Virus record (IMG/VR): IMGVR_UViG_3300008110_010000
Span: 1-64,000 of that record
DNA: 64,000 nt
Direction: 5' to 3' (one strand)
Below, piece by piece: positions 3,534 to 32,801 of this stretch. A model generated the notes under the pieces. It saw only the letters and a program-made list of their open reading frames with translations. It made no database searches and was not told the origin of the DNA. The stretch's first letter is position 1. Each line of letters opens with the position of its first letter. Position numbers and translations under genes: made by a program.

Positions 3534-4109
3534 TTAAATCAGGGATTGGCCTTCTGTATAATATTTTGAACCTATTGGGAATTCAACTTCACTGTTCAAT
3601 TTAAAAGTGTTTTTAACGAAATTTATACCATTGCTGAAATATAAATTTTCATAGGAAATCGATGGAATTTTTTTTAGATCAATCCAATTTTTGAATTCCT
3701 CTTTATTATTTTTCAGTGATGTTCCATAGTAAGATATTATTTCTTCCTCAGTAATGATCTTTTTTACCATATCTCCATTGTATCTGTGATGCCATAAATT
3801 TGTTTTTTCTGCAAACAGGTATGATCTAGATTGTTCGTACCAATTTTCTCTATATAAACACATCACCACGTCGCTTATATCCAGAAGTGTTGAAAAATCT
3901 ACATTATTTCTCCATAATTCCTTAATGAAATAGCTTTTATTCGGATCGATCCATGACGTATCCTTATAATTTACATCCTTCGTGAAATCATTATTGTCGG
4001 GATTATACGGCTCGTGGGCAATTATAAATTTATTTTTTAATGATAATCTAAACCACTCTGTTAGTGTTTGTCCCCCGGATCTACCCTCGGCAATTACAGT
4101 TAAAACCAT
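3534..4109 (-). CDS. Sulfotransferase-like P-loop protein
   Basis: N-terminal AEGRSGGQTL (PAPS-binding-like), HEPYN, SYENL. Confidence 0.55.
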   Translation of the reverse strand: MVLTVIAEGRSGGQTLTEWFRLSLKNKFIIAHEPYNPDNNDFTKDVNYKDTSWIDPNKSYFIKELWRNNVDFSTLLDISDVVMCLYRENWYEQSRSYLFAEKTNLWHHRYNGDMVKKIITEEEIISYYGTSLKNNKEEFKNWIDLKKIPSISYENLYFSNGINFVKNTFKLNSEVEFPIGSKYYTEGQSLI

Positions 4110-4120
4110 ATCAGAATATT

Positions 4121-4573
4121 TTAATTAGAAACACTAAAGTTATTTGATGTGAAAATTCTTTGCGCATGTGTATTCCAATCCTCACATTCACATTTTATTG
4201 ACGAATAGGACCCTAACATCTGAGAGCATGTCTCGTTGACAAACCAGATCGGAGCTAATTTTGGTCTTTTGATCCTGTTAGTAACATACAGGTTATACAG
4301 AAATGCGATTTCATTATCAAGTTTATTAAACCAAACATAGCCCAGCGGAGATTTGTTTGAAAATAAAATAAAAAGTGTATGACCCTCTTTTAGTCTATTA
4401 AAAACGTCTTCTAATTTGAACATCTTATCCCACGAGTATTCCTGTTTAAAATAGTTGATTAGAATCTCCATATGATTTATATGAATGTCTTCAATTTGAT
4501 TTTCGATTCTTACCACACCCAATTTTTTTTGATCTATAAAATCTTCCCTGTTTATATTAAAGTTAATCATCAT
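4121..4573 (-). CDS. GNAT-family acetyltransferase
   Basis: PLGYVWF..AFLYNLYV..R and WNTHAQRIF..NNF match the GNAT motif pattern. Confidence 0.55.
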   Translation of the reverse strand: MMINFNINREDFIDQKKLGVVRIENQIEDIHINHMEILINYFKQEYSWDKMFKLEDVFNRLKEGHTLFILFSNKSPLGYVWFNKLDNEIAFLYNLYVTNRIKRPKLAPIWFVNETCSQMLGSYSSIKCECEDWNTHAQRIFTSNNFSVSN

Positions 4574-5640
4574 ATTAGTTTTCTTTCTTTGTTTATAAAT
4601 TCTTGCATATTATGCCAAACATCGTCTTTTAAACCAATTTTATTTAATTCATTAATAAAATCTTGATGATCCGGATGATCCTTGTCCCAAATTTTATGTA
4701 GTTGAAATTCAGTATCACTAAATGTTCCCCAATTTGTAATTTTTCCAAAAAATACATTTAATTTATTTCCAAAGATGGAGTGCATCAAATCATAGAATTT
4801 CTTCATTTCTTTATAGTTTGATGTTTGCACTACAAACGAGGTTTTTACAGATTTTAATGTTGGTATAGTAGATATGAATTTTAAATTATCAATTAATTCT
4901 TCCCAATTACCTCCCACCCTTACCTTGTTTTCGTAAGTATCTTTAGTAGCCGCATCTATGCTGATTTCACACGTTTTTACATATTTGTGAACTTTTTTCA
5001 TAGAGTTCCACATTTTTTCATTCCATTTTGTTGCATTTGTATGTAAATGGATTCGTTCTAAATTTGACCATTTTGACTTATCAAAGTTTCTTAAAAAATC
5101 TCTAAATCCAACAGAAACAAATGGATCACCACTACCAGTTATATACAGCGTTTTTGTTGTTTTACCGTATTCATTTTCAATATCCTCAATCGTTTTTTTA
5201 ATCCTTTGTATTCCATCGGCACTTTCCACAATTAAATCAACCCTACAAGATGGACATTTAAGATTGCACGTTCTATCAAATGAAAATTGAATTATTGTTG
5301 GGGGTTCAGTGATCCCGTTATTAAATAAATCAATTCTTTCTTTTAATTTACTCGGCATCTCATTCTTATGATAAAGAGTATCAGTATTACCAATTTTTCC
5401 AAATGTTACTAATTGATGTAAAAACGGACACTGACCTTTATCACAATATTTATAAGAGCCATCTAAAACGGATTTTCTGATTTCTATAGCCTCTTCGGAT
5501 TCCCAGGAATTTTTTAATGTGGTGTTTTCTGGTAGATACTTTTTCAACCACGATGCACAACAAAGAAACCTATTTTTATGTTGTATTTCAAGTGACACAA
5601 ATGGAACAGCACACACATAATTTTTTAAATCGATACTCAT
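4570..5640 (-). CDS. Radical SAM protein with N-terminal SPASM/twitch-like Cys cluster
   Basis: CNLKCPSC (CxxxCxxC), GSGDPF, N-terminal CAVPF...LCCASW. Confidence 0.85.
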   Translation of the reverse strand: MSIDLKNYVCAVPFVSLEIQHKNRFLCCASWLKKYLPENTTLKNSWESEEAIEIRKSVLDGSYKYCDKGQCPFLHQLVTFGKIGNTDTLYHKNEMPSKLKERIDLFNNGITEPPTIIQFSFDRTCNLKCPSCRVDLIVESADGIQRIKKTIEDIENEYGKTTKTLYITGSGDPFVSVGFRDFLRNFDKSKWSNLERIHLHTNATKWNEKMWNSMKKVHKYVKTCEISIDAATKDTYENKVRVGGNWEELIDNLKFISTIPTLKSVKTSFVVQTSNYKEMKKFYDLMHSIFGNKLNVFFGKITNWGTFSDTEFQLHKIWDKDHPDHQDFINELNKIGLKDDVWHNMQEFINKERKLI

Positions 5641-6314
5641 TAAATTATATTTTTAATTTGTCTCTTGTTATTTAATATATCTATTAAAAATTCTGAAAAT
5701 TCATAGTGGGAGTCCTCGCACCAATGACCATCGTCTACCTCTCCATTGGTTTCTTGTTTTATGTTTCTATATTTTTTAGATAAAATAATCCCACATTTTG
5801 ACAGGTCTGAACACCATGACCAATGAATTATTTTATTTTTAAGAGAAAAATTAATCAATTTCATCCAGTTACATATTTCTAGTACGTAAGGGAAATTCGA
5901 TCTATTAATTAGTAATTCTTGTATTGTTTTTTCCGAGATAAACTCAAATGTCTCAATTTTTTTATGTGCAAAAAATCCGTTTTCGTTACCTGGTTCAGGA
6001 TTGAAATGTCCCCACTGATCTGACTTATTTACTAATCTAAACCTACTTTGATTAGTCCAACCAAAAATTAAAATATCCCCTTCCTTAATTTTATCAACAA
6101 CTTTACAAAACTCCTCTAAAATATGCGAGTTATCAACACCTCCCAGTCCTAAATTTATTAAATTTAAACCAAGTTTCTCAGCAATAATCTCACCATAAAC
6201 TTTCGGGACATATCCCTTATATTCAATGTATTTTTGTCTCCAGTGTATTGTTGATCTTTCCGGGGGGTAAAAATAATCGGTAAACGAATCCCCAAAGGTC
6301 CACAGATTATTCAT
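5640..6314 (-). CDS. SGNH/GDSL hydrolase-like protein
   Basis: LWTFGDSF, NLGLGGVDN, C-terminal DGH. Confidence 0.65.
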   Translation of the reverse strand: MNNLWTFGDSFTDYFYPPERSTIHWRQKYIEYKGYVPKVYGEIIAEKLGLNLINLGLGGVDNSHILEEFCKVVDKIKEGDILIFGWTNQSRFRLVNKSDQWGHFNPEPGNENGFFAHKKIETFEFISEKTIQELLINRSNFPYVLEICNWMKLINFSLKNKIIHWSWCSDLSKCGIILSKKYRNIKQETNGEVDDGHWCEDSHYEFSEFLIDILNNKRQIKNII

Positions 6315-6856
6315 CAGATCATTGTTTTATTTTTTTCTTGTCTTGTTGTTAATTTAATTGTTACATCGGATATCTCGATAGTATGATCTAGCTCTATAAT
6401 AAAGTTTAAAATTTTAAACAAATCCTCGAATTTGAGTTTATTAAAATTCGCACCAAACATTTTATTATTCTCCATTGTACTTGGGTTAAAATTAATAACT
6501 CTAACTTTTTTATACGGATTGGCAATATTTAATGTCTGTGATAAATTTATTAGGTGTTTTTTATTTGAGACATATAGAGGACTAAAACATCCGTCCTCGT
6601 GTACTGCGGACGTTCCAAAATTTATTATTGTTTTTTCTAAATCCTTCCATTTTTCGAATAGTTCAAAAAAAACCAAGGATTGCTTCACATCTTTACTATA
6701 TGCATGATTTAAAAATACATCGCATGAAGCTACCTGCGATAATATAGTGTCAATTTCTTCTCTTAGATCTATTTTAATTATATCGTGGGTCTTTCCCCAC
6801 ATAAGCGAAGCGTAATTGCCAAAACCGTCTGAAGTACCTGATATTGCTATTTTCAT
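6314..6856 (-). CDS. Short-chain dehydrogenase/reductase-like protein
   Basis: MKIAISGTSDGFG Rossmann start, FLNHA, YVSNKK. Confidence 0.6.
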   Translation of the reverse strand: MKIAISGTSDGFGNYASLMWGKTHDIIKIDLREEIDTILSQVASCDVFLNHAYSKDVKQSLVFFELFEKWKDLEKTIINFGTSAVHEDGCFSPLYVSNKKHLINLSQTLNIANPYKKVRVINFNPSTMENNKMFGANFNKLKFEDLFKILNFIIELDHTIEISDVTIKLTTRQEKNKTMI

Positions 6857-7356
6857 ATTAATTTCGAATTTCCTATTTGTAAATCATTCTTATTTAAAAA
6901 TAATATAAGGGACCATCTCTCACCTCCTAATATTTTTTTCACTTCATGGTCCCTATCACTTTTCATTGTATAAATTGTCCCAGTAACTTTAGGAAGTATT
7001 TCTAAAGGATTATATGCAATGAATTCTCCACCATCATAACTTTCATTTAAACAAACACCTATATTTAAAATTTGATCAGGATGCGTTGTCGAATCATTAT
7101 GTTTAGCAAATTCATTACCAGCCAAATAACGATGCAAATATATTTCTTGCATTTCATTTATTTTATTTTTTGAATATTCATCTAAAAGAAATTCTTTCAG
7201 TCGATCAAATATCCACTGGGTGTTACTATTTCTAAGTACAACATGATAATAGTAATTAAAATCATTTCTTTTAAATAATGATGATGAGTGTTTAGGTTTA
7301 AAAGTATTTGATAGATTAATTATCTTATTACATTCTTCTATTGAAAATGAAATCAT
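6853..7356 (-). CDS. 2OG-Fe(II) oxygenase
   Basis: HND...YDGGEF...HEVKKILGGERWSL. Confidence 0.85.
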   Translation of the reverse strand: MISFSIEECNKIINLSNTFKPKHSSSLFKRNDFNYYYHVVLRNSNTQWIFDRLKEFLLDEYSKNKINEMQEIYLHRYLAGNEFAKHNDSTTHPDQILNIGVCLNESYDGGEFIAYNPLEILPKVTGTIYTMKSDRDHEVKKILGGERWSLILFLNKNDLQIGNSKLI

Positions 7357-7844
7357 ATTAATTTTTTTTTATTCATTATGTCGGTTCTTAATCGTTCAGA
7401 ACTATTCTCGTCAAATAGATCTTCATAATATTGAATTGGTATTTTTAATTTATCAGACAATTCCTGTAAATCTTGACCCATTTTTATTAAAAGTTCTCTT
7501 GATTTATCAATCGTTTCTACTGGTGGTGCGACATATTCATATGGGGTTCCGGAATGATACCCATTTCGAATATTGTGATAAAGGTAAGAGTATGATTCGA
7601 GATGATTTTTAAAATTTTTTCGATTTAATAATATCACATCATCAAATTTTTTTGATAATTCAAAATTATTCTCGTGCTGATGTATTATTGTTTTAACAAC
7701 AACGTTATTCATATCATCGTCATATAAAAAACGATCACTACCGTCAAACGGCTCAAAGATTGCTCTAAATTCTCTTTCTTTCGAAATTTTATGTAATAAA
7801 GATGTAGATCCCGTTCTGGGTAATGATATTATTAAAATTCTCAT
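7353..7844 (-). CDS. Sulfotransferase-like protein
   Basis: ISLPRTGSTSL, FEPF, YYEDLF. Confidence 0.65.
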   Translation of the reverse strand: MRILIISLPRTGSTSLLHKISKEREFRAIFEPFDGSDRFLYDDDMNNVVVKTIIHQHENNFELSKKFDDVILLNRKNFKNHLESYSYLYHNIRNGYHSGTPYEYVAPPVETIDKSRELLIKMGQDLQELSDKLKIPIQYYEDLFDENSSERLRTDIMNKKKLI

Positions 7845-8383
7845 ATTAATCTTTTATTGTCATATAATTTAAGATATTTAAAATCTGTATTAGTCATCCA
7901 AACATTTAAAGCGCATCTAACCCCAGTCGTGACAGGCATAACCCCATGGTATATTTTACTTCCATCAAAAGATATGGACTGTCCTATTTTTAACAAATGT
8001 TTTTGTGAATCGTTTATGTTTTTTGATTTTGATAATATAAATCTCCCATCTTCAAAATTTTCGCTTAAAACTATTACTGTAGTTAGCTGTGAGGTTGAAT
8101 CCAAGTGTAAATCTAATCTTCTACTATCGTAATATTTGGTAATACTTATATTAAAATCTTCAATTTTAAAATCTTTAAAATTAAACCACAATTTAAATTT
8201 TTCTTCTTCAAAATTTTTTATGAACCTGTCAAATATCAATTTATTAAATCCTAAATCGGAAATTCTTTTACAATCCCAAACCTCGGATGGATTATAATTA
8301 AATTTTTTACCCACCCTATCTGCATATTCAATAATTGAATTACATTCCTCACCTCCAAAGAAATTGTTTATCGAATAGTTCAT
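7841..8383 (-). CDS. 2OG-Fe(II) oxygenase
   Basis: HLD...FEDGRF...HGVMPVTTGVR. Confidence 0.85.
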   Translation of the reverse strand: MNYSINNFFGGEECNSIIEYADRVGKKFNYNPSEVWDCKRISDLGFNKLIFDRFIKNFEEEKFKLWFNFKDFKIEDFNISITKYYDSRRLDLHLDSTSQLTTVIVLSENFEDGRFILSKSKNINDSQKHLLKIGQSISFDGSKIYHGVMPVTTGVRCALNVWMTNTDFKYLKLYDNKRLI

Positions 8384-9015
8384 AATATTTTTTTATCCTT
8401 TATATCCTCCACAAATTCTACAACGGGTTCTTCTATTTCTAATAATCCATGAATTATTTTATACATTTCGTAACATCCTTTAGGTCCTGGATGAAAATCT
8501 ATTTTTTCTCCAACTCCTTCTTCCCAATTGGAAGTTACCTTAATAAGTGTTACAAAGTCAGAGGTAGGAATGGCGAATTGTTCACTCCATGTAATAAACA
8601 CTGGATTATATATTTTTAACCATTTTTGGAGATTTTTTAAAAATTTAATGTCATTTTCCCTAACACCGTTTATCCAATTATTACCTTCAGTGAGTCTTAA
8701 ATCATCTAATTTTTCGGCAAATTTACTATCCTTATAATATTGTGGCGATCTGTACTGGTTATTTAAATATAGTTCTTTTTTATCCCCATAATACCTTCCG
8801 GGTAACCTTCCAGGGTCAGTAAATACAATAACAATTCTATCTCCCTCCATATATTCATCTAAATTACCTAATTGAAAAATTATTGAGGAGTTATCAGCCC
8901 CAAGTTTACCATGTTTATAAACTTCGTAGTGTTTTGATAAATAATATCTCCAATGGTATTTTGGTATGTGCCAATCAACAAAAGAATCCCCAAAGCAAAA
9001 TAATCTCGGTTTCAT
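8380..9015 (-). CDS. SGNH hydrolase-like protein
   Basis: FCFGDSF, GKLGADN, DFHPGPKG. Confidence 0.65.
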   Translation of the reverse strand: MKPRLFCFGDSFVDWHIPKYHWRYYLSKHYEVYKHGKLGADNSSIIFQLGNLDEYMEGDRIVIVFTDPGRLPGRYYGDKKELYLNNQYRSPQYYKDSKFAEKLDDLRLTEGNNWINGVRENDIKFLKNLQKWLKIYNPVFITWSEQFAIPTSDFVTLIKVTSNWEEGVGEKIDFHPGPKGCYEMYKIIHGLLEIEEPVVEFVEDIKDKKIL

Positions 9016-9518
9016 TAAATTAAAGACGTTCTTTTTTTATTAAACATTATAACTAAAACCCTCCTTTGTCCAGATTCTAACTGTGTAACTTGGTGAACCT
9101 GGTTGTTTCCCTCGAAATTAACATACTGTCCAATTTCTGTAAAATTTACATCCTCTCCATCAATTATTAATCTTCCTCCCACAAATTCATTCGATAACAA
9201 AATTAACGTGGTCTGTAAAACAAAATACTTATCTCTGTGAGGTTTTGTTAAGTTTCCTTTATCATATATTAATTCATAGAAAAAATCTATTTCATATTCA
9301 GGTTTGCCAAATTTTTCAACAATAAATGAATTAAACTTGCTATCGTGCATCCCATAATATTTCATTGATGTCAGGATTAGTGCATCCTCGCCTTTGATAA
9401 CTATATAGGGATGCTTATATTTTAAATTTTCATATTCTAAAGGATTCATTCCCCCATTTTCCGAAAGTGCTTGATTGATGTAATCGATCTCTTCGCTATT
9501 TAAACAACCAATATCCAT
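9015..9518 (-). CDS. 2OG-Fe(II) oxygenase
   Basis: HRD...FVGGRL...HQVTQLESGQRR. Confidence 0.8.
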   Translation of the reverse strand: MDIGCLNSEEIDYINQALSENGGMNPLEYENLKYKHPYIVIKGEDALILTSMKYYGMHDSKFNSFIVEKFGKPEYEIDFFYELIYDKGNLTKPHRDKYFVLQTTLILLSNEFVGGRLIIDGEDVNFTEIGQYVNFEGNNQVHQVTQLESGQRRVLVIMFNKKRTSLI

Positions 9519-9520
9519 AG

Positions 9521-10339
9521 TTATATCAAGATGTTAATTTTTCCTTTAGTCTTTTCCGATATGATTTTATTTTCTCCAATAAAACGGTATATTTCATCGG
9601 AAATTAGTTCATATCCAAGCTTATTTGGATGTACACCAACAAGGTTAATTGGGTTTTTAAAATTCTCCCAAATACTTTTTTTATCAAAACTGGTTAAAAA
9701 GTCCCTAAATGTTTCTTTGCGGAATCCCCAATAGTGCCTAGTGTCGATCAAATCGGTTTTATCAATTTCCCCTATAATATTTTTTGGCAACATCATATCG
9801 AATCCATCGCAAAACAAATATCTAATACCCAAATTTTTAAACATATATTGCAAATACAATAAATAACCCTGGTTGACTATGTTATAATAATTTTCGTTGT
9901 ATAAATTAACCGTGTACCATTCCTTATAGTCGATTTTTAATTTATTATAAATTTTATTTTCCCCATTTGAGCTCAGTATATGATCGTATATGTATTTTTT
10001 GTCTAGATGTCTTTTACTCCATGAATGCCATTCATTATCTGGCGGAAAAAATGGCAATTCTTCCCTTAAGGGGGAAGACCACATTATAATCACTAGATCA
10101 TTCTCTTTAATCCTACCAGTATCTATACATTTACAAACGCAATTAAATATGAATCGATTATCTGATCCACCTACTCCGTAATTTTGGAGGTCTATTTTTA
10201 ATTTTTCTGCTAATTGTTTTGGCCAAGAATATTTGCTCCGAATTTTTGTTTTTTCCTCTAAACTACTTACCGCATTCTCTTCTGCTAAATCTCCACCAAC
10301 ACCCTCCGTCCAGCTATCCCCGAATGTATATAATTTCAT
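9521..10339 (-). CDS. SGNH hydrolase-like protein
   Basis: LYTFGDSWTEG, NYGVGGSDN, GVHPNKLGY. Confidence 0.7.
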   Translation of the reverse strand: MKLYTFGDSWTEGVGGDLAEENAVSSLEEKTKIRSKYSWPKQLAEKLKIDLQNYGVGGSDNRFIFNCVCKCIDTGRIKENDLVIIMWSSPLREELPFFPPDNEWHSWSKRHLDKKYIYDHILSSNGENKIYNKLKIDYKEWYTVNLYNENYYNIVNQGYLLYLQYMFKNLGIRYLFCDGFDMMLPKNIIGEIDKTDLIDTRHYWGFRKETFRDFLTSFDKKSIWENFKNPINLVGVHPNKLGYELISDEIYRFIGENKIISEKTKGKINILI

Positions 10340-10938
10340 AACAGGTTTTTTTTAAACATCTTATTGATTTCTCTTTCTCTTACCCAAATAACTAAAATAT
10401 ATTTTACACCATCCACAATTGGTAAACCAGCATGTAATGATTTTTTATTTAGTGTTCTATCCGGGTTTAAATTATTCCACACCAGCAAATCCCCCTGATT
10501 TCCTTTTATTTTAATTTTTTTCAAAGGAAATTCAGTTTCTCCCCCGATATAATCATCATTTAAATAAAATATTCCGGTTATTAATCGATCACCGCTTTCC
10601 CCATTAGGTATATTCTTTGGGTCTCCGTAGCAGTCATAATGTGGCTTGTATTCTCCCCCAATTCCATATCTTATAAAGGATACCGGGGTTTCTTGCTGAT
10701 TAATGGTTGTTTTTGTTTTTTCTGAGAATATTTTACGAACTTTTTTTAGTAATTCGGATTCATTTCCATATACAGCAATTTCAGCTTTTCTATATTTTAT
10801 ATCTGATTCCACATCCCCATTAATTGTTCTCGCAGTTTTAAATTCGTTAAATTCTTTTATTAATTTTTCACAATCCATTTTATCTAATACTTCTGCATGT
10901 AATTGATATAAAAGGTTATTATTTTCAAAGTATCTCAT
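10336..10938 (-). CDS. 2OG-Fe(II) oxygenase, prolyl-4-hydroxylase-like
   Basis: YKPHYD, YLND..GGETEF, HAGLPIVDGVK; start moved to the ATG that overlaps the upstream stop. Confidence 0.85.
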   Translation of the reverse strand: MRYFENNNLLYQLHAEVLDKMDCEKLIKEFNEFKTARTINGDVESDIKYRKAEIAVYGNESELLKKVRKIFSEKTKTTINQQETPVSFIRYGIGGEYKPHYDCYGDPKNIPNGESGDRLITGIFYLNDDYIGGETEFPLKKIKIKGNQGDLLVWNNLNPDRTLNKKSLHAGLPIVDGVKYILVIWVREREINKMFKKNLL

Positions 10939-11426: not shown

Positions 11427-11429
11427 TAT

Positions 11430-13441: not shown

Positions 13442-13456
13442 AAATATCCACAGAAT

Positions 13457-13600
13457 TTAAGAATGTTTTAACTTAATCAGTTCTACAAGTTTTGACAATA
13501 TAGTGAAGGTTTTCTGTTTTTTATCCTCGCTGATCGATGAAGCTTGTCTTAATTTAAGATCAACAGTATTAATTGACTTATATTTTGTTGGTTTTATCAT
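13457..13600 (-). CDS. Small hypothetical protein (47 aa, not in the ORF track)
   Basis: MIKPTKYKSINTVDLKLRQASSISEDKKQKTFTILSKLVELIKLKHS fills the gap directly after the Hint gene. Confidence 0.55.
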   Translation of the reverse strand: MIKPTKYKSINTVDLKLRQASSISEDKKQKTFTILSKLVELIKLKHS

Positions 13601-13605
13601 GATCT

Positions 13606-15480: not shown

Positions 15481-15520
15481 ACTTAATATTTTCTTTTATA
15501 TCCCAATATAACAAAATGCA

Positions 15521-16070: not shown

Positions 16071-16076
16071 TAATAT

Positions 16077-25672: not shown

Positions 25673-26991
25673 TCTAATAATTTTTTGTTTTGTCCTAGAA
25701 TATTCTCAAATGTTAATGATCCATTTAAACCGTCCTTTCTGAACTCTGCTATTCTTATCATGTTTTCTTTCCCTCTCTTTCTGCCCTCTTTATAATCTGG
25801 ATACGATTCTTCGAAAGTTTTTTTGGTTTTTAAATCTTCTAAAGCCTCCACATAAATTTGGGTTTTCGATGTAACCCTTGGCTTAATGTAATCTAGGGTA
25901 TCGTCTATAATTTCTTCGAGGATGGACCTAGGTATTGACAATGGAGACATAAGAACAGAGGAATCGAAAGAAAAAGTTGTTTTTATATAGGTTACTACAT
26001 TTAATTCCACTGCACGATCGAATAATTCTTTTATAGACAGTAGGCCTGGAAGAGTTATTGTAAGATCAAAAACCATTCCATGATCGCCGTATAAATCGTT
26101 TAGAAAAAGACCTCCCTTAAAATTATCTAGCCACTTTTCCCACACTATTCCAGTTCTGATAAATTCAACAATTTTTCCAGTTCCATCTATACTTGCACAC
26201 AGATTTACCCTTTTAAAATGAGGCAGAAAATCATATAGATTCATTCCTTTATATGATACCCTGCTTAAATTTGTGTTGTATCTTATTATAACATTCTTGG
26301 ATTGATTATTATCAACCAAATACTTCATGATATCCCAATGAATGTCCCACATCAATGGTTCACCACCTACCCAATATATTTCTTCTATTCTATTCTCTTT
26401 CACTGCTTCCCAAAGTTCGTTTTCAGTAACTTCTTTCTGGAATTTTTTAAATTTTTCTTGATTTTCTTTTTTATAAAATGGCTCGGTTTCTAAATTAATG
26501 TTGCCCATTATTTTTCTTTCCGCCTCCCACTGTGAACTTAACAAGTCGCCACACATTCTACATTTAAAATTACACAGATTACTTATCCGATAGTCATATG
26601 ATATTGGTTTCATGTGAGTGTAACCATCATCTTCCGTTTTTTCGAATATCTCGTCTATTTTGTGGGGAAAAAGTGTATTGGTGAAATAACCTTTGTATGT
26701 GTAAAGATTTAGAATTTGATCGTTACAAACCTGACATTGTGGAATTGACTCTCCGGACATTATTCTTTTTCTAATGTTTTTCATATAATCACTATTCCAA
26801 TGATCCTCCAGCGAAACTGGTTTAAAATGTGAGTTATCGTCAGGATTTTCAGAATCTATGTACTGTTTAATATAGTTTGCCTTTTCCCTACTTGCACAAC
26901 ATAATCTTCTTTCCCCCTGTGGGGAAAGATATGTGTGTGTCCACGGTGCTGTACAAAAAAATTCATTTCCATCCGAAGGTTTTATTCTCAT
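25654..26991 (-). CDS. Radical SAM protein with twitch/SPASM-like N-terminus
   Basis: CTAPW..LCC; CNFKCRMC; GGEPL. Confidence 0.85.
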   Translation of the reverse strand: MRIKPSDGNEFFCTAPWTHTYLSPQGERRLCCASREKANYIKQYIDSENPDDNSHFKPVSLEDHWNSDYMKNIRKRIMSGESIPQCQVCNDQILNLYTYKGYFTNTLFPHKIDEIFEKTEDDGYTHMKPISYDYRISNLCNFKCRMCGDLLSSQWEAERKIMGNINLETEPFYKKENQEKFKKFQKEVTENELWEAVKENRIEEIYWVGGEPLMWDIHWDIMKYLVDNNQSKNVIIRYNTNLSRVSYKGMNLYDFLPHFKRVNLCASIDGTGKIVEFIRTGIVWEKWLDNFKGGLFLNDLYGDHGMVFDLTITLPGLLSIKELFDRAVELNVVTYIKTTFSFDSSVLMSPLSIPRSILEEIIDDTLDYIKPRVTSKTQIYVEALEDLKTKKTFEESYPDYKEGRKRGKENMIRIAEFRKDGLNGSLTFENILGQNKKLLEWWTQI

Positions 26992-27908
26992 ATTAATCTG
27001 CTAGATTTTATTATATTCTGCGTATAGAGATCACCCCTTCCGTTTGAAATCCATTCATACAACAATTCTGCCCATAATTTGTGCGATTTGGGTGTTGGAT
27101 GTACACCATATAATCTTTCCTCCAACGGTATCTGTTTTATATAATTTAAAAATGAATTTGATGGCTTGTCTTTCATCAGAAAATTGGATTCTGGTACATG
27201 GTCCCATTTTAATTTACTCATACGGTATAGATCCTCCCCCCAAATACCTTCAACATATTTGAAAGAATCTATCCATTTCATAATATTTAAGTCTATAAAT
27301 TTTCTTTCCATTTTATAGATATGATGTTCCTCAGGTAAAGCATTGAACAAATAACATGGAATTCCGTACTTATCGCAAAACGTACGTATTTCAAAATTGT
27401 AGTTTATGAAATCGTACGCTCCTTCATAGTCATTTTGAACAACCGATAAATACCACTTAAAGAATTCCCTCATTCCATATTCCTCTTTATTGAAATCTCC
27501 GTTACTGTTTAGAGTTTTTCGGTATATTTTATTATGAGTATTGAAAAAAAATTCCTTTCTAACTATAGAGGTCCATCCAATGACTACAATGATGTCATCT
27601 GGAGTTTTATTAGGGACAATGTAGTTTTCAAGTAGCCAGTTTAAAAGTGTTTCAAAAATCCATTTGTTACCTACTGCAGGCTTGGCTAAATTTATAACCT
27701 CTTTTGCCCCTATTAATTCTTTTAAATATGTTGGCCAAATTCTTTCAATCCTATATTGATCGTTTTTTGCGTCAGTATCTTCTTCTATTATCCCGTTAAA
27801 TTTATTTATTTGGTGAGGCTTTGATGGAGCTTCCAAAAACTGTGGGTCCACAATTTCACTACCATATGTAAAGCTATCTCCGCACACAACTAATTTCATT
27901 TCACTCAT
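26988..27908 (-). CDS. SGNH hydrolase-like protein
   Basis: VCGDSFTYG, NLAKPAVGN, GVHPTPKSH. Confidence 0.7.
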   Translation of the reverse strand: MSEMKLVVCGDSFTYGSEIVDPQFLEAPSKPHQINKFNGIIEEDTDAKNDQYRIERIWPTYLKELIGAKEVINLAKPAVGNKWIFETLLNWLLENYIVPNKTPDDIIVVIGWTSIVRKEFFFNTHNKIYRKTLNSNGDFNKEEYGMREFFKWYLSVVQNDYEGAYDFINYNFEIRTFCDKYGIPCYLFNALPEEHHIYKMERKFIDLNIMKWIDSFKYVEGIWGEDLYRMSKLKWDHVPESNFLMKDKPSNSFLNYIKQIPLEERLYGVHPTPKSHKLWAELLYEWISNGRGDLYTQNIIKSSRLI

Positions 27909-29460
27909 CTTTAATATATTTTAGCATTTCATCCTGGATATCGGGTTCGATGTAATCCTGAGATCCTGGATTGCTATTTTGAGGATCTAATACCCATCCC
28001 TCTTTTTTTGCGGTTTCTATCACATCGTCGACATATTTATTAGATTTAGCATCGTCACCATCAACCATTCCTATTTCAAGGGGCTCTATTTTTGTTTCAG
28101 GTATCGAATCGAACCATTCTGATAACATCGGGAATGATTCTTTAAAATTCCTATTTCTTCTTATGTCATATTGAATATAAAAAGATTTAAAATCTCTTTC
28201 TCTAGATTCAATAGATGATGTAAATCTATGCCCAGTTTCAACTTCTCTTATGTAAGCAATCATTCTGATTATTCCATCTCTCTCAATATCTAGTAAATCA
28301 GAAATATTCTTACTTAGCCATCCCTCTATATGATTTGCTCGTTCAATTCTTATGTCTTGCGGTAGTGTAACTATAGACTGAAAGCTTGGAAACCTTAATA
28401 TATTAAAAGAACAAATCGGGAAATGCTTGCCAAATTTTTTCTTCATTTTAATTACCTCATCCATAAATTCAGTAAGACTAAACAGACACAAAGAATTTAT
28501 AGTCATCATTACGTTTAGGGATGCCAATTTACCTTCTTCACAAACCCTGTACATATTTTTAAGCCATTTTTCCCAGATTAATCCATATCTGATATACTCA
28601 GCTTGCTTCCCTGTTGCTTCGCATGATGTGTAGAGATGAAACGTTTTAAAGCTGTGTGTCGACTTAATAAGTTCTTCCAAGAGTTCGTCTTTCTGTCCTA
28701 GATTGGAGTTAACTGCAAATTCCACACTACAATCCTTATTGGTTTCCCACCATTTCATCAGTTTCCAGAAATCTTGAGACATTGTTGGTTCACCTCCTGT
28801 TACTCTCAATTCTCTTAAAGAATATTGAAGCTCTCCCTCCCACCATTTCCAAAATGCTTCGATGTATGGATTTCCGATATTTTTTTTACCGTATGGGAGA
28901 GAGTGCGAACCATCATGCTGGAAAGCAGCTGCACCATCACTTACTAAATTCTGATATGGGCCGAACTTTTTTATATCATTTTGCCAGGTTGTAGAAAATG
29001 AAGAATTGCAGTAAGAGCATGCAAAGTTACAATTGGGATCGAATGCAATTTCTAATGTTTTTAGATCCACGTCTTGCTGCCATCCGAGTTTGTTCTTGGC
29101 ATCTTTTAGTTCTTCATCGGTGTAAATAACAGATTTATAAACCCGATCAGAAACTTTGTCGCTTCCCATGTCCTCTATTTTCCAGCAATACTCGCATTCT
29201 TTAGGTCTTTCTCCCTCCAGCATTTGTTTTCTGACCAATTTTTTATAGCTAGTGTTGTGTATTGCTTTATAACTTTGCGCAACTTCTGCGAGGGGTATTT
29301 TATGAGCTGGGGGGTGATGGCAACTAGCTGTAGTTCCGTTTCCTAACCAGATTGTTGCGTTATACCATTTAGCACCACAGAAGGAAGGGGAAACAGAGTT
29401 TATCGCTCTGTCCCTATATTCTTGGTAGCTCTCCTCTCCTTTTTTTGCAAATATTCCCAT
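27901..29460 (-). CDS. Radical SAM protein with twitch-like N-terminus
   Basis: FCGAKW..SCHH; CNFACSYC; TGGEP. Confidence 0.85.
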   Translation of the reverse strand: MGIFAKKGEESYQEYRDRAINSVSPSFCGAKWYNATIWLGNGTTASCHHPPAHKIPLAEVAQSYKAIHNTSYKKLVRKQMLEGERPKECEYCWKIEDMGSDKVSDRVYKSVIYTDEELKDAKNKLGWQQDVDLKTLEIAFDPNCNFACSYCNSSFSTTWQNDIKKFGPYQNLVSDGAAAFQHDGSHSLPYGKKNIGNPYIEAFWKWWEGELQYSLRELRVTGGEPTMSQDFWKLMKWWETNKDCSVEFAVNSNLGQKDELLEELIKSTHSFKTFHLYTSCEATGKQAEYIRYGLIWEKWLKNMYRVCEEGKLASLNVMMTINSLCLFSLTEFMDEVIKMKKKFGKHFPICSFNILRFPSFQSIVTLPQDIRIERANHIEGWLSKNISDLLDIERDGIIRMIAYIREVETGHRFTSSIESRERDFKSFYIQYDIRRNRNFKESFPMLSEWFDSIPETKIEPLEIGMVDGDDAKSNKYVDDVIETAKKEGWVLDPQNSNPGSQDYIEPDIQDEMLKYIKDE

Positions 29461-29461
29461 G

Positions 29462-30115
29462 TTAAATTATTTTGGCGCTAGGCGCTATTTTATTGAATTC
29501 GTTGATCGAATGGCTAGAGTATTCTGGATCTTCAAATATAATTCCATGATTTCCGTTCCCACTTTTATCGAATGTTTTAAATTTTGAATTTCTTTCAAAA
29601 TCAAAAAACGAGTACAGCTTTTTTGATTTCTCGTCAAAGGAATCGACGATTTCATCGAAAACTGCAATTTTATAAATATCCCCTTTGAACCAGCATTCAT
29701 AAGATCCACTGTATGGATTTATAGATCCTATAAAAATATTCTTGTCTGAATAAGATTCAATTGGACCGGTTTCTTTTTCACCTTTTAAAATTCCATCGAT
29801 GTATATTTTAACAGAATCTGAAACTGTCACCATGACTTCCATTCTTTTATGTATATCATCAACAGGTATCCAGATATCGTTATATTGATAGGGTTTAGTG
29901 TACCAAGAGAATTTAACACCATTTGGTTTCTGTAAAAATATTCCCATATGGTATCCTATCCTTCCTACAATCAACGACTCATCCTCTGCAAACTCAGAGA
30001 GTTGAAAATCCCCATAAAGAGAAAAATTCCCCTCCAGATTTTCAAAATTCTTTGTGTTCGTATTATTTTTAGAATTGTTTGGGATGTAATATGCTTTCTT
30101 TTCGAATCTCATCAA
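29462..30115 (-). CDS. LamG/concanavalin A-like domain protein
   Basis: IYIDG, IFIGS, FKGDIYKIAVFD, DKSGNGNHG. Confidence 0.7.
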   Translation of the reverse strand: MMRFEKKAYYIPNNSKNNTNTKNFENLEGNFSLYGDFQLSEFAEDESLIVGRIGYHMGIFLQKPNGVKFSWYTKPYQYNDIWIPVDDIHKRMEVMVTVSDSVKIYIDGILKGEKETGPIESYSDKNIFIGSINPYSGSYECWFKGDIYKIAVFDEIVDSFDEKSKKLYSFFDFERNSKFKTFDKSGNGNHGIIFEDPEYSSHSINEFNKIAPSAKII

Positions 30116-31494
30116 ATTATTTTTTTATAAAATTCCTCAAATTCTGGAAAAACCTTCAAAAAATTGGTGCCTCTTCTTTTATCGTGATTGTCTACAAAAA
30201 TTCGGAAATCCCTCCTGTTCTGTAATAAGGTCTCTTCAGGTTCTTCCGTTACCATCCAATCATGAATTCTATTTAACTTATTGATTTCGATGTCGGTATA
30301 TCCAAATCCATCAAGACCAACTCTTATTTGTTCGTAGAAGTCCATTAGCTGAGCTTGCTCTTTTACTACTGCAGACCATTCCTTATCTAATATTTTCACT
30401 GTCTGGTGTGGAGGCCACCTTAAATAGGACGAGTCTAACATAATAGAGGAGCCATAGTATCTGTGAGGGTTGTGATATTCTTCCTTAAGCTTTACCACAT
30501 TTTCTATTAACTTTTCATAATTAGGAACGGAAAGTGCGTTATATGTGGACATTATTATTACGGTCAGAGGCTCAATTTCTTTCAATAGAAAATTAACTCT
30601 ATCCCACCATTGGTTGAAGACCAAACCATGTCTAATGTATTCAGCTTGTTCTCCCCAGGTATCTGCACTGGTAAATAGTATCACCTCGTTTACCCTGTTC
30701 TCGTCTATCATTCTTTTTAATTTTTCTACCATTAGATTAAAAAGCTTATCTGGTGCTCCTAAATTCGTATTGAGAGAAAAATTTAAATTTCTGTTTGGGT
30801 TTTTTTCATCCAAGATATAATCAAAAACCTTAAAAGTGTCTTTAGACAGAAGAGGTTCCCCTCCCGTTATTCTAAAAGTATGAAGATCTCTGTATAAATC
30901 AGGCCACCATTTCCAGAAAGCCTCAACGTATGGGTTCTCCTGATTATGCGGTCTTGGGATCATGTTCAGATCCTTCAAATATTCTAAATTGTTAAATCTA
31001 AAGCTGGTAGGATATGGTCCATGCTGCTCTATTTCTTGAACCCATTGGGAAGAGAACGACGGTCCACAATACGAGCATTTAAAATTACAGTGATTACTAA
31101 AAGCTACCTCAACATACTTAGGATTGTAATTTTCTTTCCACCCTAAATCTTTTATTTCATTAAAATATGGGGCAGACCAGGGTTCAGAAGATTTATAAAT
31201 TCTATCGGAAAATGCATTTGATGTATCTTCTATATTCCAGCAATAATCGCATTCATCTGGTCTTTTACCATGAAGCATTTTTCTTCTCTGCTGCTTTTTA
31301 TAAACTGTATTATGTAGAGCAGATGGGTTTTTTTCTAACTCTGATAGTGGGATATGATGCGTGCCTGGATGGTGACACGAATGTGTTTGTCCCATTTGTA
31401 AATGAAGTGTTACTTGAGTCCATTTTGCTAAACAAAAGCCACATCCAACATCGTTTAATTTATTTCTAGTTTTGTCGAAAAATTCGTTTAGCAT
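30112..31494 (-). CDS. Radical SAM protein with twitch-like N-terminus
   Basis: FCLAKW..SCHH; CNFKCSYC; TGGEPL; close paralogue of 27901-29460. Confidence 0.85.
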   Translation of the reverse strand: MLNEFFDKTRNKLNDVGCGFCLAKWTQVTLHLQMGQTHSCHHPGTHHIPLSELEKNPSALHNTVYKKQQRRKMLHGKRPDECDYCWNIEDTSNAFSDRIYKSSEPWSAPYFNEIKDLGWKENYNPKYVEVAFSNHCNFKCSYCGPSFSSQWVQEIEQHGPYPTSFRFNNLEYLKDLNMIPRPHNQENPYVEAFWKWWPDLYRDLHTFRITGGEPLLSKDTFKVFDYILDEKNPNRNLNFSLNTNLGAPDKLFNLMVEKLKRMIDENRVNEVILFTSADTWGEQAEYIRHGLVFNQWWDRVNFLLKEIEPLTVIIMSTYNALSVPNYEKLIENVVKLKEEYHNPHRYYGSSIMLDSSYLRWPPHQTVKILDKEWSAVVKEQAQLMDFYEQIRVGLDGFGYTDIEINKLNRIHDWMVTEEPEETLLQNRRDFRIFVDNHDKRRGTNFLKVFPEFEEFYKKII

Positions 31495-32801
31495 TATAGT
31501 AATCTTTTTTTAATTATCGGATTGAGACTCTCCAAACAAATTAGATCGTTTGGTAAATTTCTGTGTTTTGAATTATTTGCAATCATTAAATCGTGTCTTT
31601 CTTTATGATTTACCCATGGATTATCTCCAAATAATCTTATATGTTCATTTATACTCGATATAAATATCTTCGATTCAAAGTCGTCGTTATCTAAAATAAA
31701 CTCTGGAAGATGATACGAATTAACAAACGGAACAATGTAATCATAATTTCTCCTGAGAATTGATTCAAAGCTATTTTTTATATTCGCTCCGTCAAGTAAT
31801 ATACATCCATTCTTGACGTAGAATATTATATTCTTTTTACTATCCTTTAAAATATTTAAAATTATTTGGGATTCTAAATCTTCCGATGATGTGTCCAAGA
31901 AAACATATTCATATTCAAAATGATCAGTAATCATGCTTCTGAGCGTCTCCTTGCTGTTTTTTTCGATCACAAAATATCTAAGATTTTTAAATTTATTTTT
32001 ATAAAAGTTTAGGGTAGTTTCCAAAACCCCTCCATAATTTTCTTCAGTTCCATCTACCGAAACAAAAGCACAGACCTCAGTAGAGATGCACGGTATGTCT
32101 TCATATGGTGGATAATGATTGTCTCTAAAATTTACTAGCTGTTTATAAAGAGAATTTGATATGGTTGAAGGAAATTCGCAGTTTGATAACGCAAGGCCAA
32201 AAACAGCTCCCTCTCCTCTTAAATCATCATCAGCCTCCTTCGCTACCTTTTTTCTAAGCATCGAATAAAATTCATAGGTTTCAAACAATTTGTCTATCTT
32301 TTCTTCGTCAATACCCTCGAAATTAAAATACATTAAATCTTCCCATGGAGTAACTGTATTTCTAAATTCAACATTATTTTTTATCAGCTCATCTTTAAAT
32401 TTTCCAAGTTTTGGATTCGTTTCTAATAAGGCTTTGAAATGTATGCTTGTAAATCTGTTGTATGAAAATCCTGGATTAAAATTCTTAGAAATAATATCAT
32501 TTATGAATTCTTCAGAATTTATCAATATCAGATCAGAATCCATATAAAGTATTTTATTATACCCCCTTTTTCTTACCTGGTTAATGAATATAAATTTGCT
32601 ATGAAAATCAAAGGTTGTGGAAAAATCGTGCTTTATTATTTCAACCCCTTCCATGTCTTTGAATTCTGACACATTATCGGTGTAAACAAATATTTTAAAA
32701 GATCCACTATCAGTGAAATTCTTTATTAAAAATTTGCAGCAGGTATAATAATACTCAGTATTAGAAGCAATTGTCGCTATTGCTATTTTATTTTCCATCA
32801 T
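31494..32801 (-). CDS. Putative glycosyltransferase-like protein
   Basis: YTDN, LYMDSD (DxD) in the N-half; GT2-like C-half. Confidence 0.5.
   Translation of the reverse strand: MMENKIAIATIASNTEYYYTCCKFLIKNFTDSGSFKIFVYTDNVSEFKDMEGVEIIKHDFSTTFDFHSKFIFINQVRKRGYNKILYMDSDLILINSEEFINDIISKNFNPGFSYNRFTSIHFKALLETNPKLGKFKDELIKNNVEFRNTVTPWEDLMYFNFEGIDEEKIDKLFETYEFYSMLRKKVAKEADDDLRGEGAVFGLALSNCEFPSTISNSLYKQLVNFRDNHYPPYEDIPCISTEVCAFVSVDGTEENYGGVLETTLNFYKNKFKNLRYFVIEKNSKETLRSMITDHFEYEYVFLDTSSEDLESQIILNILKDSKKNIIFYVKNGCILLDGANIKNSFESILRRNYDYIVPFVNSYHLPEFILDNDDFESKIFISSINEHIRLFGDNPWVNHKERHDLMIANNSKHRNLPNDLICLESLNPIIKKRLL

Follow-up and report, generated by a model that had tools for sequence, protein, structure and literature searches.

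Several systems are known in which a short peptide at the extreme C-terminus of a protein is recognized in trans. In bacteriophage T4, the otherwise unrelated proteins gp43, gp33 and gp55 share a short hydrophobic motif at their C-terminus, joined to the folded part by a divergent linker of variable length, which serves as an interchangeable docking peptide for a single hub, the sliding clamp (PMC2988020). Cargo proteins of family-1 encapsulins carry a C-terminal targeting peptide on a flexible linker (native NTGGDLGIRK, consensus DGSLGIGSLKG) that is read by a shell of the HK97 fold, the fold of every tailed-phage capsid (PMC7925596). The MuA degron ...RRKKAI (C-motif 2), recognized by ClpX, combines basic residues with a non-polar, unstructured C-terminus (PMC12723719). 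Non-polar C-termini in general lower protein levels through degradation, and hydrophobic C-termini are normally depleted in bacteria (PMC7246954). Here we describe a C-terminal ending, Lys-x-hydrophobic-hydrophobic (K-x-Phi-Phi), on about fifteen small enzymes encoded in one gene array of an uncultured, AT-rich aquatic phage. The window analysed is a stretch of 64,000 nucleotides.

How does this ending compare? The T4 epitope is hydrophobic plus acidic and resides on three DNA or RNA polymerase-associated proteins, whereas the phage motif is K-x-Phi-Phi and is found on small oxygenases, hydrolases, methyltransferases and similar enzymes, with no hub identified. About half of the 2OG family tails contain DLGI, reminiscent of the encapsulin peptides, but the other families lack the Phi-G-Phi core, encapsulin peptides do not end in two hydrophobic residues, and no encapsulin-like shell gene lies in the array. 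MuA requires only one or two terminal non-polar residues and a strongly basic run, while the phage tails have one conserved Lys and one family is net acidic. Finally, overlapping gene junctions dominate the array and demonstrably bias the last residue towards Ile or Leu, but this bias predicts neither the penultimate hydrophobic residue, nor the Lys at -4, nor persistence without an overlap.

An initial annotation had listed 20 C-termini consisting of a basic residue followed by [LIMF][IL], on enzymes said to be of unrelated folds. We confirm this observation: all 20 endings are present with the codons and stops given. Of the 14 genes in 3534-11939, 13 carry the tag, the exception being 4121-4573, which ends ...SVSN. 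The last gene of the array, 3534-4109, ends CTG ATT TAA and is convergent with the plus-strand gene 3031-3498. In total, 20 of 39 minus-strand ORFs end in [LIMF][IL], compared to 1 of 32 plus-strand ORFs (IFL at 45510-47693; Fisher p = 4.6e-6), and a binomial test against the 4% frequency of the internal dipeptide yields p = 4e-18. Genes were called by a simple longest-ORF procedure. The fold assignments of the initial annotation (2OG, SGNH, radical SAM, SDR, SET, LamG) were correct, but the roughly 20 proteins fall into about 10 superfamilies, not 20: 2OG oxygenases (6853, 7841, 9015, 10336, 10935), SGNH-like proteins (5640, 8380, 9521, 22088, 26988), SET proteins (12534, 12968), the pair 3534 and 7353, radical SAM enzymes (4570, 30112), the SDR-like protein 6314, the protein 11430, the LamG protein 29462, the DUF7796 protein 22744 and 31494. 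At least 7 mutually unrelated families still share the ending.

Table 1. The minus-strand array, its C-terminal tails and a plus-strand control cluster (positions are those of the window; Phi, hydrophobic residue; L091, one of the loci carrying orthologues).
Positions	Strand	Feature	Observations
3534..37424	-	Tightly packed array of 39 ORFs, mostly tailoring-type enzymes	2OG oxygenases, SGNH-like, radical SAM/SPASM, SET, SDR-like, GNAT, Hint protein, P-loop kinase, NTP-transferase/cupin, GT7+LamG, GT2 and methyltransferase
3537..3548	-	Tail QSLI of gene 3534-4109, last of the array, no downstream co-oriented gene	L091 orthologue (39% identity) ends TKFI (TTT ATT TGA); no co-oriented gene was seen to follow it, although a second scan found a candidate ATG-ORF 33 nt downstream
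4573..4584	-	Tail RKLI of radical-SAM gene 4570-5640 (ATGA overlap)	Orthologues end KDLI (TTG ATA) and KSVI (GTT ATA)
5643..5654	-	Tail KNII of SGNH-like gene 5640-6314 (TAATG overlap)	L091 orthologue ends KNII
6317..6328	-	Tail KTMI of truncated SDR-like gene 6314-6856 (TGATG overlap)	Close orthologues (84% identity or more) end TII (gap 7-8), KLL (no downstream gene, TTA CTG TGA) and TLI (ATGA); last residue hydrophobic in 28/29 of the database near clade; distant clade ends ...PTTQLK; PDB SDRs end 6-7 residues earlier
6856..6867	-	Tail SKLI of prolyl/lysyl-hydroxylase-like 2OG oxygenase 6853-7356 (ATGA overlap)	35 of 37 database homologues end Phi-Phi; 12-residue extension past the RxS strand compared with 6ax6; AF2 pLDDT below 50 for residues 165-167
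7356..7367	-	Tail KKLI of gene 7353-7844 (ATGA overlap), related to 3534	Orthologues end KII (ATGA), NII (TAATG), NII (gap 16) and VFI (gap 44); hhalign with 3534 gives 91%
7844..7855	-	Tail KRLI of 2OG paralogue 7841-8383	Orthologues end KLI, KLL, KIL and SLI, the last with no downstream gene within 120 nt
8383..8394	-	Tail KKIL of SGNH-like gene 8380-9015	68 of 71 database homologues end Phi-Phi; 69 of 70 have K/R at -3 or -4; AF2 pLDDT below 50 for residues 208-211
9018..9029	-	Tail TSLI of 2OG paralogue 9015-9518 (TAATG overlap)	Orthologues end SLL (CTG TGA, none downstream), NLL/SLL (ATGA) and KII (gap 7)
9524..9535	-	Tail NILI of SGNH gene 9521-10339 (2-nt gap)	No close orthologue recovered
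10339..10350	-	Tail KNLL of 2OG gene 10336-10938	Orthologues end TLL (ATGA) and TLL (TAA, gap 1)
10938..10949	-	Tail KTII of 2OG gene 10935-11426	Orthologues end KTII and KSVI
11433..11444	-	Tail KNLI of gene 11430-11933 (3-nt gap, TAA stop)	Orthologues end KNLI (gap 3), KTII (ATGA) and SNLI (gap 1)
12971..12982	-	Tail KNFI of SET gene 12968-13441; paralogue 12534-12968 ends FRTI	Orthologues end KNFI three times (TAATG and ATGA) and KDLI (gap 6); the paralogue's orthologues end RTI, RVI and KLL
22091..22102	-	Tail VKII of SGNH-like gene 22088-22747	Relatives end PKLI, RKLV and NKLI (gap 9); two others end EYE and DNE
22747..22758	-	Tail KILI of gene 22744-24525 (DUF7796)	Single relative (43% identity) ends KCKII
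26991..27002	-	Tail SRLI of DUF6071/SGNH gene 26988-27908	Nearest relatives end KKLV, NNLI and YKLL; more distant ones vary
29465..29476	-	Tail AKII of LamG gene 29462-30115 (1-nt gap)	Orthologues (48-63% identity) end ARII and QKII (twice)
30115..30126	-	Tail KKII of radical-SAM gene 30112-31494; not conserved, looks lineage-specific or a by-product	1 of 71 orthologues has the tag; terminal residue I/L in 24/27 ATGA overlaps and 2/19 TAATG overlaps
31497..31508	-	Tail KRLL of gene 31494-32801 (no family assigned)	No divergent orthologue recovered
42200..51029	+	Second sugar-tailoring cluster with similar AT content and similar ATGA packing, used as internal control	1 of 8 genes tagged

Could the ending be a mere by-product of compact operon architecture, in which the last codons of each gene double as the AT-rich initiation region of the next? 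In part, this is the case. Start codons in this phage group prefer A at -2 and T at -1, and a gene whose stop overlaps the next start as NNA-TGA therefore ends in ATA or TTA (Ile or Leu) about 55–65% of the time. A position matrix derived from 129 intergenic starts predicts the last residue in ATGA overlaps as I.29, L.24 and K.19, compared to.33,.32 and.20 observed over 288 junctions, and predicts a tag frequency of 19.6%, compared to a group-wide value of 21%. In the families of 30112 and 27901, and for the terminal I/L of the large radical-SAM enzymes, the ending follows junction geometry. In contrast, the 34241 family keeps I/L in every geometry, and the GT7-LamG ending is family-conserved. 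This layer accounts for the non-conserved tags on the large enzymes.

As an explanation for the small enzymes of 3534-13441, however, the by-product is largely refuted, and we consider it very unlikely. The initial annotation had named full explanation by overlaps, or loss of the motif in orthologues without them, as grounds for rejection, and neither was found for these families. Stratified by junction geometry, homologues of 3534-13441 end Phi-Phi in 70/84 cases, compared to 19/127 for other genes of the same 12 loci. The respective counts are 10/17 versus 5/48 with no nearby downstream gene, 10/14 versus 1/19 at gaps of 0–10 nt and 34/35 versus 4/13 in ATGA overlaps; in TAATG overlaps, 11/11 homologues end Phi-Phi. 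Fisher p values range from 1e-4 to 4e-6 per stratum, with a weaker value for gaps of 11–57 nt (p = 0.014); orthologues are not independent samples, and these values are optimistic. Retention is lower where no downstream gene is near (59%, against 98% in overlaps), indicating that junction effects contribute and that the two layers are hard to separate completely. Nonetheless, the penultimate hydrophobic residue is not predicted by start context: T at -4 is found in 33% of intergenic starts and 32% of the 288 ATGA junctions, but in 34/35 of those in the subcluster. Plus-strand ATGA junctions of the same genome are untagged (0 of 5).

The motif, carried by the small enzymes of 3534-13441 and some others, persists in orthologues at 26–95% identity, and at least seven families change junction geometry between close orthologues yet keep Phi-Phi. 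It is anchored to the stop codon and not to the ATG, as the same tag occurs in ATGA, TAATG and gapped junctions and on terminal genes with nothing downstream (3534 and the SDR-like orthologue at locus L099). Of the last two codons, only position 2 is held as T, whereas positions 1 and 3 vary. T occupies position 2 in 97/100% of ATGA overlaps, 76/86% outside them and 67/83% where the next gene is more than 10 nt away or absent, compared to 35–54% in other genes (35–42% outside ATGA overlaps). Synonymous usage at the tag equals bulk usage: Leu TTA is 60% in both, and Ile ATA/ATT/ATC is 15/13/1 against 50/41/9% in bulk. Over 106 distinct tails, K occurs at -4 in 50%, and -3 is S/T/N/Q in 60% and K/R in 30%. 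The consensus reads K at -4, a polar residue (N/T/S/K) at -3, L/I/F/M/V at -2 and I/L/F/V at the free carboxyl end. Database homologues of three unrelated folds retain the ending or, for the SDR-like near clade, a hydrophobic last residue (Table 1).

Three more distant phage arrays (L109-L111, 26–29% GC) carry the tag on 12, 15 and 16 genes, one of the 15 being peptide deformylase, outside the array. Here, the junctions are mostly TAATG with TAA stops, plus gaps of 15–83 nt, and the flanking HSP20, UvdE, DUF2061 and Hint-like genes lack the tag. These data also bear on a signal acting in cis during translation, in which the last residues of the nascent chain, or their tRNAs, would tune termination and re-initiation. 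Overlapping gene pairs are translationally coupled in general (PMC6728339), the tag is almost universal at overlapped junctions of the array (45/46), and the phage supplies tRNAs for TTA and CTA and has two CAT-anticodon tRNAs. Yet the tag persists on terminal genes and at gaps of 35–83 nt, plus-strand overlapping junctions lack it, and hydrophobic dipeptides are not known to act in this manner. We regard this possibility as very unlikely.

Does the tail instead serve a structural role, folding back onto its own domain or onto a neighbouring protomer, with the similarity between families reflecting coincidental convergence on a hydrophobic plug? Each family conserves upstream tail positions in its own way, D-L-x-I-x4-L-I in the 2OG tail and [VI]-[DE]-F-x-I-E-x-K-x-Phi-Phi in the SGNH-like tail, AF2 places residues 192-200 of 8380 confidently on the domain, and the GT7-LamG and GT2 proteins of the same array have clearly structural hydrophobic ends. 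However, the same four-residue consensus recurs on at least 7 unrelated folds, and the tails are extensions beyond the canonical fold ends: relatives in the PDB end before them, the distant SDR clade does without, and tail length varies within superfamilies, roughly 8–16 residues in the 2OG group and 10–19 in the SGNH group. AF2 models are confident (pLDDT 94.3 and 92.6), but exactly the conserved last 3–4 residues score below 50 and are modelled as unpacked coil, although low pLDDT at the last few residues is common in any protein and only weak evidence of exposure. A structural element in cis or in homo-oligomers appears unlikely.

A C-terminal degron, recognized by a host or phage AAA+ protease such as ClpXP, FtsH or Lon, would give the whole enzyme set a short, coordinated lifetime. 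The resemblance to MuA, the destabilizing effect of non-polar C-termini and the predicted exposure of the tail agree with this view, and the phage carries its own tmRNA, whose tag ends ...YAIAA, making C-terminal-tag proteolysis relevant to it. On the other hand, there is no evident benefit in destabilizing about 15 enzymes over long evolutionary times, the SGNH-like tails are net acidic (-0.8), unlike MuA, and no protease or adaptor gene was seen in the window. We consider a degron unlikely, but the foremost alternative to docking.

The initial annotation had read the tag as a protein-level signal for docking on a scaffold, targeting to a compartment or procapsid, or proteolysis, and this interpretation is supported in part: its core holds for the small-enzyme families, but part of its list is a non-conserved start-context by-product, and the present data do not distinguish among the functions proposed. 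What our analysis shows is the superposition of this by-product and a genuine C-terminal short linear motif, maintained by selection on the amino acids; we are highly confident that the latter exists. Any function, and recognition in trans by a common partner, either a docking hub or an AAA+ unfoldase or protease that would use the tail as a degron, is inferred from sequence alone, recognition in trans being the most likely reading and somewhat more likely than not. Pfam scans of about 59 window proteins revealed no PDZ, clamp or encapsulin-shell domain and no reader protein was found, though the window covers only 64 kb of a genome of at least 219 kb. As the plus-strand sugar-tailoring cluster of the same phage lacks the tag, it is not a general requirement for tailoring enzymes. 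The ending looks like a shared address tag: in the inferred mechanism, the flexible tail would present two hydrophobic side chains, the terminal carboxylate and a lysine to a groove on one common reader. Most likely, though only tentatively, this would be a docking site on a shared hub, scaffold or substrate that gathers the enzymes of the array, resembling the interchangeable clamp-binding epitopes of T4.

The window has about 32% GC and carries 14 tRNAs, a tmRNA, a collagen-like tail fibre gene and an endolysin gene. Over the stretches fetched it is identical to IMG/VR contigs of 75-219 kb, and it thus represents a large uncultured aquatic phage. A megablast search with 13.5 kb against cultured phages returned no match at the DNA level. 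From 37424 down to 3534 the minus strand holds 39 tightly packed ORFs, which encode 2OG oxygenases, SGNH-like proteins, radical SAM/SPASM enzymes, SET, SDR-like and GNAT proteins, a Hint-domain protein, a P-loop kinase, an NTP-transferase/cupin, GT7+LamG fusions, GT2 and a methyltransferase. Individual genes are referred to here by their lower window coordinate. The initial annotation had listed about 20 proteins of this stretch that end in a basic residue followed by [LIMF][IL]-COOH, and every C-terminus it listed is present, with the codons it gave. The observation is confirmed: 20 of 39 minus-strand ORFs end in [LIMF][IL], compared to 1 of 32 plus-strand ORFs (Fisher p = 4.6e-6), whereas the same dipeptide makes up 4.0% of internal positions. 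The carriers fall into about 10 superfamilies, however, rather than into 20 unrelated folds. Further features of the window and of one relative are collected in the table.

Features of the window, and of one related locus, that accompany the tagged gene array
Position	Strand	Feature	Observation
12-821, 37533-38321 and 38604-39209	+	RNA-repair-like gene set flanking the array	TROVE/Ro-like RNA-binding protein, calcineurin-like phosphoesterase and HAD_SAK_2 domain of the 'Swiss Army Knife' RNA repair type
6853-6861, 7353-7361 and 7841-7849 (examples)		Recurrent junction TTAATATGA	Punctuates all three frames at once: TGA stops frame 0, TAA stops frame +1, ATG starts frame +2
11936-12592	-	Untagged array member, 2OG-FeII_Oxy_5-like oxygenase by protein-language-model and structure neighbours	One of the few array genes that consistently lacks the tail (ends ...HINS, HINN or YVTN)
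13606-15480 and about 13455-13598	-	624-residue protein with a C-terminal Hint / bacterial-intein-like domain ending ...AHN|RGIPKI, and a small ORF	In six relatives checked (loci L097, L098, L101, L103-L105) the Hint protein is followed by a conserved 44-47-residue ORF (MIKPTKYKSI...LIKLKHS); the pair borders the tagged array in all of them
32802-35647	-	Two paralogous fusions of a eukaryote-type beta-1,4-galactosyltransferase domain (Glyco_transf_7N/7C) with a LamG domain	Orthologues of the 34241 copy keep a strand-like [IL]-x-[VA]-x-[IL]-COOH in nearly all of 64 sequences, whatever the junction type
39755-40666	+	SPFH/prohibitin-family gene	Best cultured-phage matches in crAss-like Bacteroides phages (about 46% identity)
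41802-42186	+	tmRNA (Rfam RF00023, 79.5 bits)	Tag peptide predicted by ARAGORN: DVELSTMTFEDAMSFVGADYAIAA; the 14 tRNAs of the window include Leu-TAA, Leu-TAG and two with a CAT anticodon
42200-51029	+	Second sugar-tailoring cluster, just upstream of the fibre gene	Methyltransferase, GT8, DegT aminotransferase, GT2-radical-SAM fusion, GFO/IDH/MocA, sugar-type ATP-grasp and PAP2; lacks the C-terminal tag (1 of 8)
51147-55778	+	Collagen-like tail-fibre gene, 1,543 residues	GC 0.44-0.47 against about 0.30 nearby
L099:10001-11094, compared with window 6314-7356	other strand in L099	Pair of 2OG (6853) and SDR-like (6314) genes	Behaves as a mobile two-gene module; in L099 it lies directly after orthologues of window genes 2476-3498, and both genes keep their Phi-Phi ends (SKFL, NKLL)

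Could the shared ending simply be a by-product of overlapping genes? This was our first working hypothesis, and for the phage group as a whole and for the large enzymes it explains the data. We fetched 80 loci around orthologues of the radical-SAM gene 30112, called ORFs by a simple procedure and sorted 1,287 distinct gene junctions by the position of the next start. The last residue is Ile or Leu in 65% of ATGA overlaps, in 38% of TAATG overlaps, in 34-35% of gapped junctions (24-29% when weighted by family) and in 18% of cases where the next ORF overlaps by more than 4 nt, against a background of 15%. Within one family the ending follows geometry: among 30112 orthologues it is I/L in 24/27 ATGA overlaps but in 2/19 TAATG overlaps, and only 1 of 71 orthologues has the KKII of the window. 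We then examined 129 start codons with at least 25 nt of free upstream sequence. These prefer T (50%) or A (33%) at -1 and A (50%) or T (35%) at -2. When these frequencies are fed into the codon [-2][-1]A, the predicted last residues are I.29, L.24 and K.19, compared to.33,.32 and.20 observed, and the predicted tag frequency is 19.6%, compared to 21% observed. In this phage group, an Ile or Leu in front of an overlapping TGA therefore needs no protein-level explanation.

The array of the window itself exceeds this expectation by far. Of its junctions, 10 of 11 ATGA overlaps and 6 of 6 one-nucleotide overlaps are tagged (p about 1e-6), whereas the five plus-strand ATGA junctions give 0 tags. 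To challenge the by-product hypothesis with other junction geometries, we obtained relatives of the subcluster 3534-13441: loci L084 and L091/92 from IMG/VR, and loci L097-L108 from contigs that encode homologues of the 2OG oxygenase 6853. A metagenome scan with the radical-SAM gene 4570 returned only 3 distant relatives. Homologues of subcluster genes end in two hydrophobic residues (Phi-Phi) in 70/84 cases, namely in 34/35 ATGA overlaps, 11/11 TAATG overlaps, 10/14 gaps of 0-10 nt, 5/7 gaps of 11-57 nt and 10/17 cases with no gene nearby. Other genes of the same loci do so in 19/127 (4/13, 1/8, 1/19, 8/39 and 5/48, respectively). Orthologues are not independent samples in these counts. A full account of the motif by overlaps, or its loss in orthologues without them, had been named beforehand as an outcome that would speak against a protein-level signal; neither was found for the subcluster, and we rejected a pure overlap artefact there.

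Close orthologues that differ in geometry keep the ending with different residues and codons. The 6314 family has MI (TGATG), II (gap 7-8), LL (TTA CTG TGA, last gene) and LI (ATGA), all at 84% identity or more, and similar series exist for 7353, 7841, 9015, 10336, 11430 and 12968. The terminal gene 3534, which ends in SLI, has an orthologue at 39% identity that ends in KFI. Because the same tag occurs in ATGA, TAATG and gapped junctions, the signal is anchored to the stop codon and not to the downstream ATG. Only codon position 2 is fixed (T), while positions 1 and 3 vary, and synonymous usage at the tag equals bulk usage (p = 1.0 for Leu and 0.97 for Ile): Leu TTA is 60% in both, and Ile ATA/ATT/ATC is 15/13/1 against 50/41/9% in bulk. 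This is the signature of selection on the amino acid. On codon diversity and synonymous usage we also rejected a conserved recombination or cassette junction, or a nucleotide motif such as TTAAT; the junctions share nothing beyond about 9 nt. Selection for an off-frame stop was considered as well, since NT[AG]+ATN creates a +1-frame TAA or TGA in 14 of 20 window tags by our reading of the codons. Endings in LL, IL and FI cannot do so, however, and LL plus IL alone make up 25 of 71 in the family of the SGNH-like gene 8380. An alternative genetic code or read-through was rejected, as there are no suppressor tRNAs among the 14 tRNAs, the ORF ends are clean and the C-termini are consistent in database gene calls. 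A role in cis in termination and re-initiation does not fit terminal genes or gapped junctions.

How widely is the ending conserved? In a collection of 5.8 billion proteins, 35/37 homologues of 6853 and 68/71 homologues of 8380 end in Phi-Phi. In the near clade of the SDR-like 6314 family 28/29 end in a hydrophobic residue, whereas the distant clade of that family (40-44% identity) ends in ...PTTQLK. Anchored at the C-terminus, 106 distinct tails give K at 50% at -4, S/T/N/Q at 60% plus K/R at 30% at -3, L/I/F/M/V at -2 and I/L/F/V at -1, and no acidic residue occurs at -4 (0% D/E). Three more distant arrays (L109-L111, 26-29% GC) show the same ending on 12, 15 and 16 genes; one of the 15 is a peptide deformylase outside the array. 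Their junctions are mostly TAATG with TAA stops, and the tag also appears at gaps of 15-83 nt. Flanking HSP20, UvdE, DUF2061 and Hint-like genes lack it. Simple paralogy does not account for the pattern: paralogue groups exist, but at least 7 unrelated superfamilies carry the tag, and tail lengths differ within superfamilies.

Where does the motif sit? Profile searches against the PDB relate the 2OG family to 6n1f and to the mimivirus collagen lysyl hydroxylase 6ax6. The 6ax6 chain ends just after the RxS strand, so the phage tail is a 12-residue add-on. The SDR-like family aligns to classical SDRs that end at ...IRPTDQ, and the phage proteins add 6-7 residues. SGNH-like tails run roughly 10-19 residues past the last helix; for this family the PDB profile search found nothing significant. 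AlphaFold2 with family alignments gives confident models. That of 6853 has a pLDDT of 94.3 and matches prolyl hydroxylases in Foldseek with TM about 0.7. That of 8380 has a pLDDT of 92.6 and only weak Foldseek similarity to SGNH hydrolases (E about 0.2-0.5), but the GDS and DxxH residues are invariant. In both models exactly the last 3-4 residues are coil with pLDDT below 50. The motif is therefore conserved yet predicted to be unpacked, on an appended tail, on unrelated folds. This is what a short linear motif read in trans looks like, although protein termini often score low in AlphaFold2. A fold-specific structural plug is unlikely for at least 7 folds with variable tail lengths; it is real, however, for GT7-LamG ([IL]x[VA]x[IL]) and for GT2 (KIISI). 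We rejected a cationic amphipathic membrane-targeting helix of about 10 residues, as in MinD/FtsA. The helical hydrophobic moment of the last 11 residues is 0.32, the same as in untagged genes and close to the 0.29 of internal windows, the SGNH-like tails are net acidic over their last 10 residues, and AlphaFold2 predicts coil.

We next compared the tail with established C-terminal signals. The nearest precedent in phage is the interchangeable hydrophobic and acidic clamp-binding epitope at the C-terminus of T4 gp43, gp33 and gp55, which sits on a variable linker (PMC2988020). The logic is the same, in that one short motif is kept at the extreme C-terminus of unrelated proteins while the flanking linker diverges. 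The composition, carriers and reader differ: the T4 epitope belongs to replication or late-transcription proteins, whereas the phage tails have K at -4 and are carried by small tailoring enzymes. Encapsulin family-1 targeting peptides (NTGGDLGIRK; an LGI core plus Lys; PMC7925596), in which a Phi-G-Phi core (LGI or GSL) with a nearby Lys is shared by all cargo of one shell, resemble the 2OG tails that contain DLGI. These make up only about half of the 2OG family, and DLGI is absent from the SGNH-like, SDR-like, SET and radical-SAM tails; no capsid or encapsulin family appeared among the Pfam hits of the 39 array proteins. A PDZ-domain ligand has a hydrophobic residue at the free C-terminus plus a class-defining residue at -2, and needs a PDZ protein to read it. 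The terminal residue of the tails fits, and position -2 is hydrophobic (class-II-like) in all tagged tails, but no PDZ domain was found in the window proteins scanned, which represent only part of the phage genome and none of the host. A degron is a serious rival. Basic residues followed by non-polar residues at a predictedly accessible C-terminus resemble the C-motif-2 degron of MuA, ...RRKKAI, recognized by ClpX (PMC12723719), although the SGNH-like family is net acidic, and hydrophobic C-termini are unstable in general (PMC7246954). Look-ups in the Atlas with 11936 and with the N-terminal part of the Hint protein gave no hub candidate. A literature search for a shared C-terminal tag on phage enzymes found nothing relevant, and no paper in the library searched describes such a tag on phage enzyme arrays.

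Taken together, the pattern is a composite. What our analysis establishes is a predictable start-context bias on the one hand and, on the other, a genuine K-x-Phi-Phi-COOH motif that marks the small enzymes of a hypervariable phage array. Recognition in trans by a common reader, be it through docking or through proteolysis, is inferred from sequence and predicted structure alone. The proposal of the initial annotation, a protein-level docking, sorting or degradation signal, is thus supported in part. The 2OG oxygenases of the array resemble prolyl and lysyl hydroxylases (6ax6, P4H, PHD), so the collagen-like fibre may be their substrate. Most starts lack Shine-Dalgarno motifs, which, together with the matches of the SPFH gene, hints at a Bacteroidota host. 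A more speculative reading, which we consider unlikely but which the evidence does not rule out, is that K-x-Phi-Phi-COOH is a cargo-targeting peptide that would load a whole set of about 15 small tailoring enzymes into or onto a phage-built protein assembly. That assembly could be the HK97-fold procapsid interior, as in encapsulin cargo loading, or a dedicated scaffold around the collagen-like fibre or the Hint-domain protein. The hypervariable '2OG-oxygenase islands' of aquatic phages would then encode a physically organised modification factory.

The separation of a real C-terminal motif from the strong Ile/Leu bias that ATGA overlaps create in AT-rich genomes provides a control that anyone mining C-terminal motifs needs. 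The motif itself offers a bait, in the form of an 8-12-residue peptide, for finding the putative reader, a sequence marker for recognizing members of the array in metagenomes, and possibly a portable tag. Arrays of small 2OG oxygenases, SGNH-like hydrolases, SET and radical-SAM enzymes are common in uncultured, AT-rich aquatic phages. A four-residue C-terminal motif that is shared by unrelated folds, conserved across distant phages and absent from the neighbouring core genes runs against the general rule that bacterial proteins avoid hydrophobic C-termini. It implies that these enzymes are handled as a set, and they may be gathered on one partner or cleared by one protease.
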